DNA from: Blepharisma stoltei ATCC 30299
Lineage: Eukaryota > Protista > Ciliophora
Direction of reading: 5' to 3'
DNA: 64,000 nucleotides
Assembly (NCBI GenBank): GCA_965603825.1
Contig: CBFDEM010000024.1
Coordinates: 1 to 64,000 of the forward strand
Position 1 is the first letter of the stretch, and the number at the start of each line of letters is the position of its first letter. The position numbers and the translations under genes are program-made. Below, one piece after another: positions 2,499 to 17,230 of the stretch. The notes below the pieces were generated by a model. That model saw only the letters and a list, made by a program, of their open reading frames with translations. It was not told the DNA's origin and made no database searches.

Positions 2499-4089
2499 TC
2501 TAGCTATTAAAAGATCCTACTTTTAGAAGATTAATAACTCTGCAAGCAATTATTTTTTATATAGGTTATTGGATCTATCGTTAATAATTATTATAATGAT
2601 ATTGCTAGAAATTTATATAATAAATTGATTTTTACTTTAAAATATTTTGGAACCAGAATTTATTATTTATTCCATCAAAGTTTCAATTCTAATAAACGAA
2701 ATCAATTCAGAAAACGTTAATCCTGAATTCTCTCCTGTGCAATTGGAAAATAACCTTAAAGAAATTTCATTAGTAAAAATACAATCTTGCTATGAAAGGA
2801 CTTATGAAATTTTTGTTAAAAATGCAAAAAAACAGTTCTTAATGGAAAATATGAGTTTATTATTATAGATCATTCTACCAATATTCCAATTATAATTCAG
2901 TTCTAATGTTTAAGAATTTTATTTTTGGTAATTTTACTTCATGTGATAATTTTAATGCAATTTATTTTAATGAAAATATTATTATAATATTTGGAGCCTG
3001 CGAATATATTTTAGCTACAGAATAATTTTGGCAAGAAAAGCATTATATGAAGCAAGACATGAAAAAAATATTTTGCTTGTCATTAAATATGATTTTATTG
3101 CATAAGAATCTCCTTCCACGTTTATAAACACCATTAAGTTCTCTCTGAATCTATTTAGACTACTGAGCCAAAGCAAAAGTTTTCTATTGAAACAAATTAT
3201 TATTTGAGTTTGAAGAGTCTATAATTATTCGTGAATATGAATCGGTGCTCTAATCTTCCAATTCAATTAAAGGTAGAATGCCCGATAAACATCAACTAGT
3301 TACTTCAGGCAATCTTTAATTTATTAGAGCCAGGCAATTTTATATTTCCCTTCAAGCGGCGCAATAGAAAAAATGATACTTATTAGTTAAAAGCTTAGAT
3401 GCACTGCTCCAGATGGAAGTATTCTAATATTATAACTATCAGAGTTATCCCATATATTTGATTCCTTTTACCTAACTAAATAATTCTCAATTTGGGAGTC
3501 AAATAATGTAAGTCCTATATGGTCTAAAGTTTTTTTGATTTCCATTAGAAAAATCATTGAATTAAGCTAGTCCCAATGCCACAAATCAATAGAATTGGCC
3601 GTAGCAAAAAAGATAAAGAAAGTGCGGGTAAGAGATTGCACTTGATTGGATGCTGTGATATGGCCTCATATTTGAATGCGAAGTTTGAGATAAGCATTCT
3701 TGGAAACTAGGGGAGAAATTCTTCTTTGTTTTCAATTATTTATGCATATATTTGCTCTAAATAGGATTATTGATTGTATTAGTACAAGTATCAAAAATTT
3801 ATAGGTGCATCTATAAAATTTTTATCTTTCCTTCTTTTCTTTTATTATCGCCCCAAATATGAATAATTTTCAATAGTCATATATTGGTATTTATCAATGT
3901 CTTTGTATATTAGCAGTTCATTTAATAGATAACGAATTATAATTTTCTTAGACGCTACCAGTATAACTTGAAAGAAAAATCAATAACTTCACTGCCTTAT
4001 TAAGAGGCTTAATAGATCTCATTTGATGCTCTTGTGCTATTACCTATATAGCAGATTTAGATAAAATTTAGCCATTATTGTTATAATTA

Positions 4090-5849
4090 ATGGAGCTTAT
4101 GCAATGCTTCGAGCCAGGATGCAAGCATGAGGTTGAATACTCTTGCCCATGCACATCTCCTGAAACTCTATCCTGTGAATTGCATGTTTTAAAGCACATG
4201 AAGCTCCCTAACGGAGTTCATGCTTGCGACTCAATTTTTTTAGAGCCATGTCAAGAGACAAAAGAAGAAATTCTTAAGTTTCTTACAAGAAAAAAATCAA
4301 AAAATATCAAACAGAGGGGGAAAATCCTAAAATCCTTTAGCAAGCGTTTGCTTGAATCAGAAACTGAAATTAGAGAACTCTTAAAAAATTTGAATTCAGG
4401 CTCGGCTGAGCTAAACAATTATTTTACAAAAATTTCCCAAACTCAAAAACTTTTAAAATCAGAGCAAGACCCGATTTTAGGATTATTGAGATTGCAACCT
4501 GATGAAGCTGTTGAGAAATTAAAAAAAATTATTTCAACCAATCAAGAATGTTCCAAAAGTGCAAACCTATTTTGTGCTCTCAGTGAAAAAATTGAAAAAA
4601 TGATTAAGTGCTTTATCGAAGACAAATTTGAAGCTTATTTAGATAAAAGATTGTCTAATATAGAAAACACTCTTCAAGATCACAATAAAGCTATTAAATC
4701 AGTCAACGAAGAGAATAAAAAGATCATTGACTCAACTAATGATCAGATAGCAAACATCAAAGACACTATTTCTAAACTAATAAATGAGAATATAAAAAGT
4801 GAGAGAGAAATAAGAGACTGGAAAGAAAAAATAATACCTAAAGCAAAAATTGAAATAGACCCGCTTAATTCTCAAATAATTAAGACTTCTCCAGATTTGA
4901 TCAAAAATAATGAAGCAGAAAAAGCCCAAAAACCTTTGAAGAGCTAAGAGAGAAGAGATCTGAAATTTTAAATAGACTAAATGACCCAGAATTAGAGCAA
5001 GACTTTAGGAGAGCCTGCTCAAAGTACAGTAGATATATATATACTGATGATCCAACTTTCCAGCAAGCTTTTCAAGATTATACTAATGCCTATCGCCAAA
5101 AAGCATCTCTTTATACAATTATAAATAAAAACAACAAAACTAATTTGATTATTTATGATACAGAAAATGATAGTAAGGAAGTCAGGATAGTAGAGACTTC
5201 TGAACCACTTAATACTGGCACTTGTATCGCTCAGCTTCCTAATGGTAATCTATTTTGCTTTGGTAATAGCCCACCTTCTGGAGTTTCATTGATAATTGAT
5301 GAGAATTATAGAGTTCGGGAGCTTCCATCTGAAACTCCTTGCAAACACTCATCAGCTATCTATTTCAATAATAGTATTTATTGCTTTGGAGGATGAAATA
5401 ATGATGTTTTAACTCTATCAGAGAGATTTGATTTAAATGAAAATCGATGAATTAAATTAAAGCCATTGCCACAAGCTGATTTCTGTTGTAATAGTGTAAT
5501 ATTTAACGGGAATATTGTGATTTCTGGGCAGGATAATAAAAATCTTTTGAGGTATTCAATTGGTAGCAACACTTTCGCAACAATTCCTTATGATTTTCAA
5601 GCTAATAATGGCAAGATTCTTATAAGTGCAGAGAGACTTTATTTAATTGAATGTGATAATGGATCAATCTATGAAAGCGAATTGTTAAATGACACTGCCT
5701 GGCGACGAATTGGAGACTCAATAATAAATGATTTTATGCAAGTTTATTTGTCATATAATAAAGGAGGAATTAACATTGCACACCATTGGAATAAGATTAG
5801 ATATTTCAAGTTTAACTTAGAGGCAAAAATATTAATTAAGCTGGATTAA
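4090..5849 (+). CDS. B-box-like Zn finger + coiled coil + Kelch-like beta-propeller protein, with one frameshift at ~4930
   Basis: N-terminal CxxxxC..CxC..CxxH..H..H motif, coiled coil, then Kelch-like blades (LFCFG, IYCFGG, RW..L.P.P; TGA=Trp at 5394 and 5448). Adding one A to the A5 run at ~4928-4932 restores frame with sequence homologous to the downstream paralog. Confidence 0.75.
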
Positions 5850-5901
5850 AGTAATTTGCTACATAAATGGGCCTCAAGAAGCTAATGAGAAAGTGAAATT
5901 G

Positions 5902-8118
5902 ATGACCATAGCCAGCAGAGATTGATGTAACGGTGAGGAGCTGTTTTATATATTCAATCAAAAGTTAGAGAGTATAAATAGATCCTTCTTTACAGAAATA
6001 TGTGGGGCATATAAAACAAATATGCAAAATACTCCTGAAATGTATAATAAAGCTAGTAAGCCCACAAGCATAGAGTCAGCAAACGTTAAGAATTCGATTT
6101 CCTTGATAATAAATGAGAACAGAGAGAGTTTAAAAGAGCCTGAAAATGCAAAAAAACCAATAAAAAAAAGCCCAGGAAAGGAGAAAAGCTTGCTTAATTC
6201 TCAAATAAGCACCCCTACTAATGATCTCAACAATAAACCAAAGGAAACAGAAAGCGCTTTAAACCTTATAGACACCTTAAGAAATAAAAGAGCTGAGATT
6301 TTGAGTAGAGCAAACAATCCAGAATTAGAGATAGATTTCAGAGCAACTTGCTCAGCAATTCAGGTCGATTCTACTCTTTATGATCCACCACTAATGCAAG
6401 CTTACCAAGCTTATATTAATGCTCATCAGCAAAAGACATGTCTTTATACTATTACAGAAAATGTTGATAACAACAGAAATAACTTAATTATTTATAACAC
6501 TGAAACTGAAACAGAAGAAGCCGAATTCTTGGAGCTTCCAGAATCAGTAGACTGAGGCACTTGCATAGCTCAAATTCCAAATGGCAAGCTATTCTGTTTT
6601 GGTAAAGCTAATCCAGTTTCTGGAATTACAGTTCTAATTGATATGAATGGTGGAATCGAAGTGCTGCCATCTGGAACTCCTTGCTATTGATCATCATGTA
6701 TCTATTTCAACAGCTGCGTCTATTGCTTTGGAGGATTAAATGATTATGATTATTTAAATCTATCTAGTAGATTTGATTTTGATCGAAATCGCTGAATCCA
6801 ATTAGCTCCAATGCCACAAGCTGATTACTGCTGCAATACTATAATATTTAATCGAAATATTTTGATTTCTGGATGGAAAAATAGAAAACTTCTGTTATAC
6901 TCAATTGATATTGACTCTTTCTCGACAATTCCTTATAAGTTTGAAAAGGAGAATAGAAAGATCCTGATAAATGCAGAGAGACTATATTTGATTGAATGCC
7001 GTGGATCAATCTATGAAAGCGAAATTGGAAGTTACTCGAATTGGAGACGAATTAGAAAATCAGCAATCTCTTATGATCCTGGTCAAGTTTATTGCTCATA
7101 TAATAAAGCAGGAATATGCATCTCAACTATTTATGGATCGTTTAGAGAATATTATTATTTTAATTTAAATCAAAAAATCATTATTGAAGTTGCTTACTAT
7201 AATGAGCATGTCTCACTTAGAAGAGTAGGTAAAAAGATTGAAGTAAAAAAATGAAATAACCAGAATTTTAAGCTCGATCCTTATTATCAAGACGAATGAA
7301 ATCTAAAAGATGTTGCTCTAAGAGTTTTAGGAGAAAATCTAGAAATAATCGAACGCTTAGACGAAAAAATCAAACTCAATCCAAGCAAGATTAAATATTA
7401 CGATAAAAAAGGCAGCGCTTTTTATAGATTAGGAAGATATCTAGAAGCAATCAAATGCTATGACAAAGCGATCAAGCTCAATCCATACAACGCTGGCTTT
7501 TACAATGATAAAGGCAAAGCTTTTAACAGTTTAGGAAGATATCTAGAAGCACTCGAATGCTATGACGAAGCAATCAAACTTATTCCAAACAGCGCTGGCT
7601 TTTACAATGATAAAGGCAACTCTTTTTATAGTTTAGGAAGATATCTAGAAGCACTCGAATGTTATGATGAAGCAATCAAACTCAATCCAAACGATGATGA
7701 TTTTTACTGGAAGAAAGGATATGCTTTAAATAAATTAGGAAGATATCCAGAAGCAGTAGAAAGCTATGATGAAGCAATCAAATTAAATCCAAATAATGTC
7801 AAATTTTATAATCGTAAAGGCAATACTCTTTATGCTTTAGAGAGATACCAAGAAGCAAAGCAATGTTATGATAAGGCACTCAAACTTGAACCCAATAATC
7901 CTTTACATTTCTGCAACCGAGCTAGAGTATTTAATAATCTCAGACAAGAAGATGCAGCTTTGCAGGACTTTAATAAGGCTTATAATTTGATGCAAGAAAA
8001 TCAATTAAGTGATGCTTTCACTGAGGATGAATGGAAATTTTCTCAAAAAGATATCAATTTTATTAATGACGTATTAGGCCGAGACCGTATTGAGCTGTTC
8101 CAAAAATTGCAGATTTAG
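5902..8118 (+). CDS. Kelch-like propeller + C-terminal TPR array (5'-truncated paralog of the 4090 gene)
   Basis: Single open frame with TGA=Trp from ~5836 to TAG at 8116-8118. Kelch region is strongly similar to 5145-5849, followed by ~6 TPRs ([28 protein letters not shown]). First in-frame ATG is 5902 (alternative 6022). Confidence 0.8.
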
Positions 8119-9770: not shown

Positions 9771-10435
9771 AACCAGTTGCTACTAGGAGTTGACAGAACA
9801 AATTCTAAAGTTGTTCAAAAAAAATGTTGAAATGTATTCGTTTTCTTAAGCTGTTTTAATAAAAACACAGAAAACTCTTAAATAGTTGGCAATTGATTGT
9901 AGAATAATTAGCTCCTCTTTTTACTATATTTTTATAACGTTACGTAAACAAAGATTTTTGCTTCTAAAACCACTATCTGGTTATTTTTTTCCTAATACCA
10001 TAGTTATTTTCAATGCAAAATTTTGATTTTAAATTCTGTATAATAATAGTATCAATTTATTCAGAAATTTCTTATAAAAATTGACAGGTGACGAATAAAA
10101 AGATAAAGCTGATCTGCTCACATGTTTATAAAGTTACTAAAGAGATTTTTATCTAATTCAGAATGAATCAACAGAATTACCTATCTATATTTACTTTTTA
10201 TTTAGCCATGAACATGGCGTATTTGGACTTAAGTAGCGAAGACTCTTGGGACGAATATTGCACAGATAGTGGCGATTTTGAAGAATTTTACGAGGAATTT
10301 TATGAAGCTAAAGAAGAAGAATTCGATGATGAAGACATGGATGAGATGGATGAAATGAAAGAATGGGAAATGGATATGGAGATGCTAGGAAAGCTAGGAA
10401 AGCTAGGCTTCAGTAGGGAAGTTGCTGGGAAAGCC

Positions 10436-10510
10436 TGGAGCATGTGTGGCGGCAATGTGGAGCATGTGTGGCGGCAATGTGGAGCATGTGTGGCGGCAAT
10501 GTGGAGCATG
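10436..10510 (+). repeat. 22-bp tandem repeat TGGAGCATGTGTGGCGGCAATG x3 plus 9-bp partial
   Basis: Three identical units at 10436, 10458 and 10480, then TGGAGCATG. Confidence 0.97.
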
Positions 10511-10587
10511 CTCTAAGACTTTTGCTAACAGAAAGAGACAAGCAAGAGGGGGCAGAAATTGCGGCAAAAATCATGGAAGAGGGAATT

Positions 10588-10880
10588 CCAGAAAACCAAG
10601 GAGAAAACCCAGAAGAAACCCCAGAAGAAACCCCAGAAGAAAACCCAGAAGAAAACCCAGAAGAAACCCCAGAAGAAAATCCAGAAGAAAACCCAGAAGA
10701 AAATCCAGAAGAGGACCCAGAAGAAAACTCAGAAGAGAGCCCAGAAGAAAACCCAGAAGAAAAATCAGAAGAAAAACCAGAAGAAAACCCAGAAGAAAAC
10801 TTAGAAGAAAACCCAGAAGAATACCCAGAAGAAAACCCAGAGGTACCCAGAGGAAAACCCAGAGGAAAATCCAGAAGAAA
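10588..10880 (+). repeat. 12-bp coding minisatellite (CCAGAAGAAAAC)n, ~24 units
   Basis: Directly visible; reads PEEN, RRKP or QKKT in the three forward frames. Confidence 0.95.
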
Positions 10881-12134
10881 TTGAAGAAATCGCTGGGAAA
10901 GTTGCAGAAATCCCTGAAGAAATTGAAGAAGAAACCCCTGGAAAAGCTAAAGGAAGACCTGTAGGGACTGAGGTTACTTGTACAAACCCCTGAAGAAGCT
11001 GAAAGTGAAGGAAAAAAGGCCTTAAGGCCTATCGGCGGCTTTTCTGCACTAAATAAACCCTAAACCCCCCTAACCTATCTATCTTTTTGTAAAATAAATT
11101 AAATGATACGTTTTGACTTTCATAATGATTAATTAATGTAAATTTAGAAAATTAACTTTTATAAAGCTAAGATGAAAAATTAATTAAAAATATAATGATT
11201 TTTGTTATCAAATAATTTTTGGGTGAATGATAACGAAGAGAAGATTGAGTTAATGCAGGTGTATTATATTTCATCTTCAATCAAAATTACAAATGAAAGT
11301 AAACGGATTTAAAATATTATTTCTGAAATATCTATAAAATACATACAAAAATTTAATCGGAATTTTTTATTTAGGATTTACTAAAAAATAATTAGTTAAA
11401 GATAATTAAAGCGAAACAATTGCTTCATTGCTACTTGATTTGTTGACTTTCCACAAAAATATTTTCAAATTACACACACAAAACAAGAGCAAATATCCTG
11501 AGTTTGTAATATGCTAGTCATAATTAAATTATGGATGTTCAAAGGATGTACCTGGTAACCTTTTTCAACAAAGACTAACCAAGCTGGTAACAACCGGTGA
11601 AGTTGATCTATGAATTTTGTTCAGGAGAACATCTGATTTCTCACAATACCTTGAAACTGATTCCATACAGTAAGGAGAATAGGTTAACGGTAAGGCTAAA
11701 CTTTTTGTAAGAGATTCTAAATATTTTAAATGCTCTTTGGTGCTGGATGAGATTCCATTGTAGCACAACATTAGAAGAGAGCCTTGATTATGGATTTTCC
11801 TTGTCAGATATTTTGATCCCACATGTGATAGGCAGGGTGAGATTTCGGTCTGGCCCCTGGTAGTAAGTCAAGGTGACCACCCGATAAACGCTAAAACCAG
11901 GGTTATTTTAGATCAATATGAAGGATTTAATGCGTTCATGCCTATCCAACAGAATTCAAACTTAATTATCTATATAATCTTTAATATGCCAGCCCAGGGA
12001 TTTATAATCATCGTTTTCATCGATATTATACCAGACAGCACACTAATCTATAAGTTCTCTTGCCGCATTACACCTTTTGGCGTAGCTGCATTCTGTATAT
12101 AATCTCATATTTGATTAATAAATTAAATTGCATT

Positions 12135-13922
12135 ATGGATCAGCTTATAGCTAAAGATCATAGGTACTGACTAAAAGAAGGGAATAAACTGTATGACAAA
12201 AATTTGTTAAAAGAAGCAATAGAATGCTATGACGAAGCAATTAAGCTTAAACCTAATTACGCTCCTGCCTACCAGGAAAAAGGCAGTGCTCTTGATGATT
12301 TAGGCAGAAGTGTTGAAGCAATAGACTGTCTTAATGAAGCAATCAAGCTTAAGCCTAATTATACTACTGCATACATCAATAAAGCCTATACACTTCATCA
12401 TTTATGCAAAAATCTTGAAGCAATAAAATGCTGAAATAAAGCAATTAAACTCAAGCCTGATGATGCTCATGTACACTATAATAAAGGAGTCGCTCTTAAG
12501 GATTTAGACAGGAAGCTTGAAGCAATCGAATGCTATAGTGAAGCAATCAAACTTCAGCCTGATCATGCTAACGCTCACTATAATAAAGGCTCTGCTCTTT
12601 TGGATTTGGAAAGATATGTTGAAGCAATAGATTGCTATAATGAAGTCATCAAACTCGACCCCACCGATGCTTCTTCTTACTATAATAAAGCTATTGCTCT
12701 TAAGCAAATTGATCGAAAACTCGAAGCAATAGAGTATTTTAATCAAGCGATCAAATTCAGACCTGCTTATGCTAAAGCTTTCTATAATAAAGGTTTAGTT
12801 CTCTCTGACTTAGGCAGGAATCCAGAAGCAATAGAATGCTATAATGAAGCGATCAAGCTTATTCCAGACGATGCATCAATTTATTATGCCAAAGCACTTG
12901 CTTTTCGTAATTTAGGCAGACAGCTTGAAGCCATAGAATTTTATAATGAGGCGATAAAACTAAAGCCTTATTACTCTGAAGCTTACTTTAATAAAGGAAA
13001 TGATCTGAGTGATTTAAAAAGATATTTAGAAGCAATAGAGTGTTATAACGAAGTATTAAAACTTAAACCTGACCAAACTTCTGCGTATTATAATAAAGGC
13101 TTGTCTCTTTGCGACTTAGACAGATATATTGAAGCAATAGAATGCTTTGACGAGGCGATTAGACTTAGGCCTGGCTATGCTAAAGCTTACAATAGTAAAG
13201 GAACTGCTCTTGATACTTTAGGCAGGGTTGCTGAAGCAATAGAGTTTTATAATAGAGCTATTGAATTCAAGCCTGACTATGCTATGGCGTATAATAATAA
13301 AGGCCTAGCTCTTAAAGCTTTAGGCAGGAGTGAGGAAGCAATAGAATGTTTTACTGAAGCGATCGAACTCATGCCTGACAATCATCTATACTTCTCTGAT
13401 CGCGGAGCATTGCTCAATGATCTAGGGCGAAAAAAAGAAGCTCAACTGGATTTTGATAAAGCAAAAATTTTGATGCAAGAAGAGCAAGCAAGAAAAAATA
13501 ATAATATCGCTAAAGGAAGTGTTGCAAAAGTAAATACTGCTTTTAGCAATAGCATACCTGAAAAAATTTCAAAAAGGAAGACAAAAAATAGAAAAGCTAA
13601 AGCAAAGTCAACAATTGCCAAGCGCATAAATAAGAAGGGAAGAAATAAGTCAGAAACTTTCGCCCTGTACATTTACAGAGTCCTTAAGCAAGTTCATCCA
13701 AACATTGGGATATCAAAAAGATCAATGAGCATTATGAATTCATTTATCAAAGATATTTTCGAAAGAATCTGCTTCGAAGCAAGAAATCTTGCTATATATG
13801 AAAAGAAAAGAACTCTCAGCAGCAGAGAAATCCAATCTTCTGTAAAATTGATACTCCCTGGTGAACTTGCGAAGCATGCTCTCAGTGAAGGAAACAAGGC
13901 ATGCACTAAATTTGCATCATAA
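12135..13922 (+). CDS. 13xTPR - histone H2B fusion protein (595 aa)
   Basis: ATG at 12135, open to TAA at 13920-13922 with two TGA=Trp (12168, 12432). 13 consecutive 34-aa TPRs, a Lys/Arg-rich linker, then [40 protein letters not shown]...[34 protein letters not shown], a complete H2B fold. Confidence 0.9.
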
Positions 13923-14488
13923 TTTAATTGAGCTCAATAATTTACTTGAGCTTTATATGTCTCATTTGCTAATCCTAAAATAATTCTATACTAAATAAAA
14001 TCTTCTTTTATTTCCCTTATTGAAATGGATTAAGAAGAAGAAAAATAGCCAAAACAAAGTATTTCTCTTTATATTGATAATAATGATAGCACGCTAATCA
14101 AATAATAGTGAACAACTAGGAAATTTTTTATATGCATGATTACGCTATTTTATAATTAATTGCTATAAATTGCATATCTAATAAGAACTTTTATAATTAA
14201 TTGCATAGTTAATTATTACTAACTTCGAAAAATATAAAATTTTTTCTTTCATATCAGGGGGATTAGAGCATCTTAATTGTTTATTAATCATTAACAAAGA
14301 TAATGTGTTAATAAATACTAAATCTAAAAGCTCTTATATTAATATTTTATTCATTTTATGATTATGAGCCTATAATGCAAAGTTAATTTATTGATATCAG
14401 AGTTTAAGAATCGGATTTAATTTTTTTTATACTTTATTTAAGTTTGTATTTTAATTTCAATTTAAAATTAGCTATCCAGTAATAATCT

Positions 14489-17230
14489 TTATATAAAAGA
14501 TATATCTTCATTGTTAGCCGAAGTCCATCCTAATTTTAAGTTCACTATCAACTTTTCATTTTTCTCTTTTATTATTCTTTCGTTATATTCTTTGATCGTA
14601 TCATCTATACTTCATAATTGAAATGATTCAGCTGGAATAATAGAAATTAAATATTTCCCACATGGTGCCCAAATTATTCCTTCAATTCATTCAAAAATCC
14701 TTCCAGTTTTAGCTATTTGAATTCCTTTCTTTATATCTCATATAATAATTTCATTCCTGTCAGTGCTGGCTAGGTAATTTTCGCAGGTTGAAAAGCAAAT
14801 TTTCGTATATAAATAATTTTTTGAGTTTTCATTATAAAGCAGTTTCTTTAAGTTTTTTTCTTTTCAGTTAAAAAGATATATTGCCGAATTATTTAGAACA
14901 TTTGGAAAGCCTAATCAATTACCGCTGCTCGATCCAATCATTTCATTTCTTAGATTTCTGATTTTATAAATTTTGCAGTCAGCAACATTACTACTTTTCC
15001 TATCTCAAATAACTAAAGACTCATAAGAAGTATAAAATATAAACATATCATTCACAAATGACGAAAAATAAATTTTGAAATCTTCATCTTCGCCATCATT
15101 TATTTCTAAAAATTGAATTAAGCCTCCTGAGTCTATACTAAATAGATAAAAATTTTCTTGCCTGGAAATAACACAAATTTCCCTTAAACACTGAGAAATT
15201 TTAACTTTGACACAATCAATACTTGTTTGAACAGTCTTTATAATCTTTCCTTCTTTTACATCAATAATCTTTATCGTATCCATAATTCCTGATTGGCTTA
15301 TTTCCGTACCTATGCATGCAATTAAATTTCCAGAGAGTTCATAATGCCTTGCATTAAATTTAGAAACATCATAATCAATTCACCAGTTTCTCTGCTTTGC
15401 ATTTCACAATTTTATTTTCCCATAATAAGCTGAAAAAATGACAAGCATTTGCCCACAAGCAGTAATATTTGATGAAACTGAATTAAATGCATCATTTTCA
15501 TTGAAGTCTAGCTTTAAATTATAATGCAAGTTTTTAAAAGGTTTGCTTGCTTTGCATCCTGATATAATTCCTGAATCATATACCCTTCCCATTATTTTAT
15601 TATTTTTATATGGTAAATTACCATTTCTAAAGTATAATATTGCCATACGCTGATTTTCGATTTCAATCAGCCCGAATTTTTGAGGAGAAAAAATAAGTAA
15701 GTATTTGCCACTTGAGGGTATGGTGCAATAGCTCATTTGAACAGCTTTAAATTGTAAAAAGGGCTCTTCTTTTTCAATGTTTCACATTTGGTACATATAG
15801 TTATTTTTTTCAATTATAAGAAATTTCCCTTGTAATGAGAAGGGTCTTCCTGATGAAATTGTAATATTTTTATATAATGATATTGACTTTGTCGATCAAA
15901 TTGTGATCTTCCCAACTGCGCTTCATAAAAGGTAATTAGAGCATGATGAAAAAATGATTCTATCTAAAAGCAAACCATGGAAAATAAGTATTTTTTCAAT
16001 GAGCTGCAGAGAAGGCAGTTTTTTTATAAAAATGTAATCTGTATAGTAATATGCAAGCATTTCTTCATTGATTGCTAATATTTTGGATGGAATTGGTGAG
16101 GACTCAATATTTAATTTATTGACAGTATTTCTATTAAAATCCCACACTCTGACTTCTGAGTTAAATGAGTCTCTTATGTTTATAAAAATCAAATTTGAGT
16201 CATAAGAGAACTTTGTAACAGTTTCGTAGCTCTTCTGAACCCATAGCCCAAGAGTGATGACTTGTTCCATTGTCAACATAGAAAATAATTTAAAATTTTT
16301 TACGTATAACTCATCCTCGTCATCTAATTTCTCTGGCTCGCTAATTGTAACAAAATATTTGCTGCATTTGGAAACTATTACCTCAGAAATTTTTTCTGAT
16401 GATGAAAGGAATAATGCTTCGAAAGGAGCCTGGCTCTGGATCTTGGAATTGCTAAAATTGGATGAAGCAATTAACGATGGAAGAAAGTCAGTGTAAGATA
16501 AATCACAATTAGAAAAGTCAGTATAAATAAAAGCTCCACGAGTTAAATCAGCAAATGGAATTTTGATCCCTTGCAAAAACCTGCAATTAAATGAGAATCC
16601 TATCAATTTTAACATTGTTGCAGCATTGCTAGAGGCCAAAGAAATATCATCGTGCTCTCTTGATAAGAGCATGATTTTATATAAGCTGTCTTGAAGCTCT
16701 TCTGACGAAAAGCATTGAAGATGCATGGTGATGTTTCTTAAATCTGACAAGTTTATTTGGTTAAAATAAGATTTCTTAAACGCATGAATTGTTTTCCAGT
16801 TTTTTAAGTCCGAAACAATCTTTTTTGCTAGCTTAATGTCAATTAGAGTTGTTGGTATTGCGCAAGTTGATAGATTGAGCTCCTGATTTGATGGGCAATT
16901 GTGATATTTATTTTTAAAGGTACCGATCATAAGATTTTTTGGGGTTTTTTCCTTCAGGTCTTTTAAATTGTTTTGGCTGCTTATTATTATTTTTTCAGTA
17001 GAATTGGAATTTCTTTTCTTGAGGGTATGGTTTAGATTTGAAATAGTTTGCAATGCATTTTCGAAGATCTTGATTTTATTGATAATCGGCAAAATTTTTT
17101 GCTTTTCATTAGGGCATAGCAGTTTTTTGAAACAAATGTTTTGGAGTCAGCAGTTTTTTGCGAAAACTCTTTGATTCAGCGTAATTTCAAAGTTGAACTC
17201 TTTTAAACACTTTTTCGTCTCTTCTTTCAT
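14489..17230 (-). CDS. Pentapeptide-repeat + WD40-repeat protein (913 aa)
   Basis: One frame with TGA=Trp from ATG 17230 to TAA 14489. ASSNAATML..F..LQGIKIPFADL..G.F..TDFS.CDLS motif followed by many WD-like blades (VRVWD, LVIWD, IIIWD). Confidence 0.8.

Follow-up and report, generated by a model that had tools for sequence, protein, structure and literature searches.

The macronuclear genome of Blepharisma stoltei ATCC 30299 (assembly of 41.46 Mb in 64 contigs) contains a gene that encodes an array of tetratricopeptide repeats (TPRs) and a complete histone H2B in a single reading frame. The gene, here called TPR-H2B, occupies positions 12135–13922 on the forward strand of the window, i.e., the whole stretch of DNA analyzed, which is the first 64,000 nucleotides (nt) of contig 24. 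The finding is carried by an intact 595-codon frame, by short-read contigs that cross the junction of the two halves unspliced, and by a synonymous excess in the H2B half. TPR-H2B is a real, single-copy chimera that is apparently expressed and whose H2B half is constrained. We give about even chances to the view that its H2B fold pairs with an H2A and thereby tethers a TPR platform.

Reading frame and domain architecture of TPR-H2B

The B. stoltei macronuclear genome consists of 64 telomere-to-telomere contigs with CCCTAACA telomeres, and UGA is read as Trp (PMC9942806). In the window, long frames are open only with TGA as a sense codon. Translation and an open reading frame (ORF) scan under this code gave a coding sequence at 12135–13922 (+), with ATG at 12135, TAA at 13920–13922 and 595 codons. 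Given the base composition of the locality, a run of 595 codons without a stop would arise by chance with a probability of ∼6e-16. Two in-frame TGA codons are read as Trp. The first, at 12168–12170, falls on the Trp position of TPR 1, and the second, at 12432–12434, on a position of the register where other repeats have Tyr or Phe.

The TPR array extends from 12162 to 13487 (TPR_1 in Pfam, E 1e-79). Strict 34-residue steps from residue 10 define 13 repeats, most of them with a pattern that begins A.(Y/F)(Y/N)NKG...L.(R). The Asn in 'YNKG', which corresponds to the Asn ladder of O-GlcNAc transferase (OGT)-type TPRs, is likewise present in most repeats. Repeat 13 is degenerate and runs on into a long capping helix (13431–13547) with the family-specific motif 'LMQEEQ...KGS...'. 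We predicted the structure of the 495-residue piece that follows the second TGA (from 12435) with AlphaFold2 as a monomer from the single sequence. The predicted local distance difference test (pLDDT) score was >90 for the modelled part of the solenoid, and the capping helix came out as residues 333–371 of the piece. According to Foldseek the closest fold to the solenoid is the TPR superhelix of OGT (6eou, TMt 0.92, 26% identity); consensus TPR proteins were also matched.

The capping helix is followed by a predicted disordered, basic stretch of ∼37 residues (372–408 of the piece; 13548–13658). Its first part, a Lys-rich junction at 13548–13610 (pLDDT 30–40), stands in place of the distal H2B N-terminal tail. 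Then come four predicted helices (residues 409–420, 428–455, 463–473 and 477–494) with the order and lengths of those of H2B. A pLDDT as low as theirs (30–55) is not surprising when one subunit of an obligate heterodimer is modelled without its partner. The H2B fold thus delimited by the predicted secondary structure, Pfam and PDB alignments lies at 13659–13916, with alpha1 at 13659–13694, alpha2 at 13716–13799, alpha3 at 13821–13853 and alphaC at 13863–13916. It matched Pfam Histone (PF00125) with 65.5 bits against a cut-off of 26.4, and with 66.1 bits in a six-frame search of the genome. In a phmmer search of PDB all top matches of the module were H2B, and the last 122 residues aligned end to end with Drosophila H2B 1–121 (E 5.5e-40). 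Amino acid identity to canonical Blepharisma H2B is 72–76%. The fused copy keeps the alphaC motif, the acidic-patch residues E105 and E113, and K120, the ubiquitylation-site Lys of TKF (human numbering). The earlier note on this DNA had described one intact frame of 13 TPRs, a cap helix, a basic tail and a full H2B with its alphaC residues and the Lys of TKF. Translation, Pfam, register and structure prediction confirmed this architecture, and the PDB H2B alignment showed those residues to be present, together with both acidic-patch Glu.

Short-read contigs across the junction

Four runs from one study, which hold 97% of the sampled words, were compared as contigs with window positions 10500–15500; that these runs are RNA is a guess. 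TPR-H2B is covered from 12134 or 12136 to 13963, 13970 or 13995. One contig runs from 12265 to 13970, and three others run from 12815 or 13224 to 13963–13995, all with 0 mismatches and 0 gaps. The segment 13923–13995 (+) is the 3′ untranslated region (UTR) as far as the contigs extend (contig ends at 13963, 13970 and 13995). In none of the four runs was there coverage at 11168–11334 or 14007–14507, which are intergenic by ORF content. Word depth differed several-fold between adjacent genes and was similar for contig pieces from the two halves of TPR-H2B (e.g., 34.5, 32.2 and 31 in run X3). The intergenic holes and the depth differences between genes suggest RNA-seq rather than macronuclear DNA as the source of the contigs. 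We concluded that TPR-H2B is apparently transcribed as one unit. This bears out the fusion proposed in the earlier note, since the contigs cross the junction unspliced in all four runs.

The same note had pointed to a 17-nt GT..AG at 13530–13546 (+) as a cryptic intron. Its splicing would give Gln and then TAG right after the TPR domain, and hence a TPR-only product. Contigs of 4/4 runs show no joint there, so that it stays unspliced in the dominant form. It measures 17 nt and has no A at −6 or −7, whereas introns of B. stoltei are mostly 15–16 bp long, and the supplement draws 16-nt intron logos for A at −7 or −6 (PMC9942806). It is very unlikely in our estimate that the locus makes two products, namely the TPR-only protein by this splicing and a 149-residue long-tailed H2B from an internal ATG at 13473–13475 (in 'LMQEEQ'). 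The sequence does offer both the GT..AG that would end the frame and an in-frame ATG 60 codons upstream of alpha1, and contigs are blind to transcript starts and rare isoforms. Against this stand the missing joint, the similar depth on both pieces, and the length and composition of the candidate intron.

Some contigs in runs X2 and X3 match the window up to 13487 and then run on as the contig-18 paralog (NGSSNLSKGS). These loose ends are a branch at the level of k-mers, due to a short common stretch around 'LMQEEQ', and no evidence for an alternative junction.

An assembly or annotation artefact that joined two unrelated genes is extremely improbable. The TPR repeats do break short-read contigs at 12815–12844 and 13224–13253. 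However, the assembly is of HiFi type with telomere-to-telomere contigs (PMC9942806), and short-read contigs of all four runs span at least 13224–13963 without a mismatch, one of them the whole of 12265–13970. Nothing in these independent contigs suggests the misassembly that the earlier note had considered.

Relationship of the H2B half to canonical H2B genes

A six-frame genome search with the H2B module found 6 intact stand-alone H2B-like genes and 2 H2B pseudogenes; the count in the supplement of the genome paper is five (PMC9942806). In a DNA search of the same genome, window positions 13617–13932 (query 238–553) matched contig 62 (C62:309264–309582) with 84% nt identity. Identity to the H2B gene on contig 1 was 80%. 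In maximum-likelihood trees the closest relative of the fused copy is the contig-62 gene, as its sister (bootstrap 86–94, and 72 on third positions only), with almost all of the change on the fused branch. In the tree the contig-62 gene itself has a branch of about zero length. In MAFFT alignments recognisable nt homology to this parent starts at ∼13611, in the proximal tail, and it ends 10 nt past the common TAA, so that the homologous segment is 13611–13932 (+), through the stop and into 10 nt of the 3′ UTR. The H2B half is evidently a diverged duplicate of the canonical contig-62 H2B gene. Canonical H2B genes have no intron and only 10 nt of flank are common to both, which makes DNA-mediated and RNA-mediated copying indistinguishable here.

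The origin of the distal tail is less clear-cut. The 63 nt at 13548–13610 have no demonstrable homology to the TPR or the H2B parent in DNA alignments. By our own count, 13554–13610 is ∼53% identical to the first codons of the parent, and a 27-nt stretch of it is 74% identical to the tail of a divergent H2B on contig 25. The distal tail is low-complexity and Lys-rich, and such comparisons therefore do not decide where the captured H2B starts. The earlier note had read ATA-CCT-GAA-AAA at position 13554 as a vestigial MPEK start. This reading would fit the end-to-end alignment with Drosophila H2B, but the parent itself begins MVKD, has a tail 7–8 residues shorter, and is homologous at the nt level only from ∼13611.

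The two H2B pseudogenes, at C53:840882–841106 (−) and C7:32591–32782 (−), carry stops and frameshifts and belong to the lineage of the contig-1 gene. The C53 pseudogene and the fused copy have three amino acid changes in common (D to N, V to I and S to R), and both read HPN and ICFEAR. A common ancestor of these two was rejected by the tree, in which the pseudogenes cluster with the H2B gene of contig 1 and the fusion with that of contig 62; the common changes are therefore parallel. The closest canonical genes, C62:309277–309606 and C1:309407–309733, lie at nearly the same coordinate on two contigs. This pair suggests that a large segment was duplicated, and that canonical histone genes either are strongly constrained at synonymous sites or undergo gene conversion.

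TPR relatives in the B. stoltei genome

The TPR half is 65–70% identical at the nt level to the 19 paralog loci compared, none of which is a close relative, and despite this divergence it is fully open. At the protein level, paralogs on contig 18 (C18:85325–87301) and contig 36 match it through the capping helix up to ∼13547 (query residues 92–97), with 49% amino acid identity over the last 92 residues, including 'LMQEEQ..SKGS'. Beyond the capping helix these paralogs continue with a coiled coil and then a C-terminal region of ∼350 residues, in which a Pfam search matched no family. Both are absent from TPR-H2B, and H2B stands in their place. The end of paralog homology at ∼13547, with H2B next, points to a member of the TPR family whose C-terminal module was swapped for an H2B copy. 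By this homology, the TPR half is a descendant of a large TPR plus coiled-coil family in which H2B evidently replaced the C-terminal module. TPR-H2B thus resembles its Blepharisma paralogs in the TPR array, the degenerate last repeat and the capping helix, and differs from them in having H2B instead of a coiled coil and C-terminal region of its own.

Evidence for constraint on the H2B fold

The ratio of non-synonymous to synonymous divergence (dN/dS, omega) was estimated between the fused copy and its contig-62 parent over 88 fold codons. There were 23 synonymous and 16 non-synonymous differences (dS 0.58, dN 0.082, omega 0.14). The synonymous excess over the neutral expectation is significant (p = 4.6e-7). 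The two canonical genes on contigs 62 and 1 differ by 21 synonymous and 0 non-synonymous changes, so the fused fold is relaxed relative to canonical H2B yet clearly constrained. As read from the alignments, several replacements bring in the human H2B residue (e.g., I73, A81 and I94), and the others are mostly conservative.

As a control for decay we used the true H2B pseudogenes of the same genome in place of neighbouring genes. The C53 pseudogene has a dS of 0.47 and an omega of 0.70 with 4 stops in 85 codons, and the C7 pseudogene a dS of 0.42 and an omega of 0.45 with 3 stops in 63 codons. The H2B half, in this comparison, evidently evolved under purifying selection that was relaxed relative to canonical H2B. 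The hint of selection that the earlier note had seen in a fold diverged yet undisrupted is upheld for the H2B half, with omega at 0.14 instead of ∼1 and stops in pseudogenes of similar dS.

These figures also bear on a neutral chimera, in which the gene would be an expressed by-product of subtelomeric gene shuffling and the low dN/dS would date from the time of the stand-alone H2B. This is hard to reconcile with 595 codons free of stops though both halves are old, with an nt divergence of 16–19% from the H2B parent and of at least 30% from every TPR paralog compared; pseudogenes of comparable age have accumulated many stops. A very recent date of the fusion is also disfavoured, since the distal tail can no longer be recognised as that of the parent whereas the fold can. 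On the other side, the gene is a single copy in a subtelomeric position, no orthologue was found, its product is apparently absent from the deposited proteome, and H2B pseudogenes as well as further histone-fold chimeras occur in the same genome. Neutrality is the main non-functional rival, and we regard it as unlikely.

Database searches for further fusions

No TPR-H2B protein was found by word-indexed searches among 5.8 billion proteins. These searches asked for H2B in long proteins (272–866 aa), for the linker with H2B (95–303 aa) and for the TPR part (205–653 aa). The matches were tandem-histone or mis-merged models, canonical H2Bs and plain TPR proteins, including named B. stoltei and Stentor entries. 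They included no 100% self match although other B. stoltei proteins were present, which suggests that the deposited proteome lacks the TPR-H2B product. A scan of JGI metagenomes with junction peptides gave canonical ciliate H2Bs only, through ETFALYIY, and the six-frame search with the H2B module gave no second fusion in the B. stoltei genome. In a whole-library phmmer search with the 495-aa piece, the list was filled by multi-TPR proteins and no best stretch reached into H2B, so that this search is uninformative on fusions. Full-text literature searches for a TPR-H2B fusion gave nothing relevant, and the available passages of the genome paper and its supplement do not mention one (PMC9942806).

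Paralogs or orthologs of the fusion, which the earlier note had proposed to look for, were thus found neither in the genome itself nor among the 5.8 billion proteins and the JGI metagenomes. With a histone fold and a folded domain of another kind encoded in one open frame, across whose junction the contigs are continuous, the predicted product would be a domain-fused histone, which is a known kind of protein. For the combination of H2B with an N-terminal TPR solenoid, these searches gave neither a description nor an occurrence outside this one genome.

A possible role on chromatin

The H2B fold of TPR-H2B would be expected to heterodimerise with an H2A and, through it, to associate with chromatin. 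A TPR peptide-binding platform would thereby be tied to H2A, either in nucleosomes or in the soluble H2A-H2B pool. In TPRs of the OGT type the ladder Asn binds extended peptides in the lumen, and its presence in most repeats suggests by analogy that the TPR array may do the same. We prefer incorporation into nucleosomes as an N-terminally extended H2B variant, in which a linker of N-tail length would let the solenoid sit immediately outside the gyres of DNA. The preference comes from a linker as long as a tail that passes between the gyres, and from the retained acidic-patch Glu, alphaC and ubiquitylation-site Lys.

Several observations weigh against this proposal. In the model from the single sequence, pLDDT is low for the H2B helices, and the fused H2B carries changes such as D51N, N67K and R99K. 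The searches of the genome, the 5.8 billion proteins and the JGI metagenomes gave no orthologue or second fusion, and selection on the fused state is for this reason inseparable from that on an earlier stand-alone copy. The runs are RNA by guess and come from one study, and their contigs are without 5′ ends, strand or rare isoforms.

The protein might instead be a soluble H2A trap, chaperone or decoy that never enters nucleosomes. Away from chromatin, its H2B fold would bind H2A or a factor that recognises H2B, with the TPR array as the working part. Selection on the fold would fit this as well as it fits a nucleosomal variant. The TPR family of this gene is large and often subtelomeric, with variable C-terminal modules, and an N-terminal domain of 470 residues may hinder nucleosome assembly. 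The nucleosome-facing features (the acidic-patch Glu, alphaC, the K120 equivalent and a basic linker of tail length) would be needless in a simple H2A trap. In NASP-type chaperones the TPRs are few, and histones bind to a large acidic insertion in TPR2; TPR-H2B has 13 uninterrupted repeats and no acidic insertion, and its best fold match is OGT, not NASP. A trap or decoy is the main functional rival, and we consider it to be an unlikely role. The data here are equally compatible with each of the roles that the earlier note had offered, namely a TPR scaffold displayed on chromatin, an H2A chaperone and a decoy.

The resemblance to the TPR domains of OGT and SPINDLY is close, since they are the best structural match, with a continuous superhelix and the ladder Asn in most repeats. 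TPR-H2B lacks a glycosyltransferase domain, and the likeness is one of scaffold, uninformative on the ligand. The nucleosomal variant that we prefer has a parallel in macroH2A. Both have a core-histone fold and a folded non-histone domain in one polypeptide with a basic flexible linker, and both are likely to display an interaction domain on chromatin. They differ in that macroH2A joins H2A to a C-terminal macro domain and TPR-H2B joins H2B to an N-terminal TPR solenoid; macroH2A is conserved across many eukaryotes, whereas our searches gave TPR-H2B in a single genome. Extended N-termini are also on record for H2B variants, namely plant H2B.8, mammalian H2B.W and sperm H2Bs (PMC11351261, PMC8857922). 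In these, as in TPR-H2B, the variation lies mostly at the N-terminus, and the fold, alphaC and tail-exit geometry are kept. Their extensions are disordered or consist of motifs of tens of residues, unlike the ∼450 residues of rigid 13-repeat superhelix predicted here.

Other histone-fold chimeras and the surrounding locus

For B. stoltei the supplement describes two long proteins of the H3 class that contain VIT and VWA_3 domains (PMC9942806). We located a long protein with VWA_3 and an internal H3-type fold at C23:541760–544384 (−), and one with VIT, VWA_3 and an internal H3-type fold at C27:344293–347514 (+). Like TPR-H2B they embed a histone fold in a long multidomain protein of B. stoltei; unlike it they are of the H3 class, have other partner domains, and carry the fold internally, not C-terminally. 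Histone-fold capture thus recurs in this genome.

A 611-codon frame at C39:418094–419926 (+), with one in-frame TGA, encodes a 'giant H2A'. Its N-terminal region is all-helical and is joined by ∼130 disordered residues to an H2A fold at the C-terminus, which includes the docking domain (PDB H2A E 7e-15; Pfam Histone 28.3 bits). As the giant H2A and TPR-H2B are of one build, they might pair. A heterodimer of the two would be a dedicated module that places two solenoid platforms on particular chromatin, e.g., during macronuclear development or in telomere-proximal regions. We mention this as a long shot.

The 5′ end of the window consists of ∼1.7 kb of CCCTAACA telomere repeats, and TPR-H2B, 10.4 kb away from the telomere, is subtelomeric. 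More TPR-encoding frames lie between the two, at 1800–2500 (−) and 5836–8118 (+). The latter has 760 codons, with at least 5 TPRs in its C-terminal part and no Pfam family in its N-terminal part. ORFs 4087–4947, 4911–5849 and 5836–8118 overlap in different frames and are either frameshifted or separate genes. The earlier note had called the neighbouring genes frameshifted. This is not established; the overlaps at 4911–4947 and 5836–5849 have no obvious tiny intron. Pfam matched no family in neighbouring ORFs. A low-complexity repeat rich in Lys, Gln and Thr (KKTQKK...) at 10407–10964 (+) is open in several frames on both strands, and contigs from the same four runs cover 10500–11081 in this region.

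Significance

H2B is among the least variable histones. To our knowledge, the fusion of a large folded domain to a core histone is well established essentially only for H2A, in macroH2A. If TPR-H2B is indeed a selected H2B with a TPR platform on its N-tail, it would amount to a naturally occurring reader or recruiter that is part of the nucleosome itself, and to a clean case of a new histone variant born by gene fusion. If it never enters chromatin, it would still be a dated example of a chimeric gene with both halves intact. Taken with the VIT/VWA-H3 and giant-H2A genes, it suggests that Blepharisma may capture histone folds repeatedly into larger proteins. This idea can be put to the test, as the ciliate can be cultured and an RNA-seq series of its development has been published.

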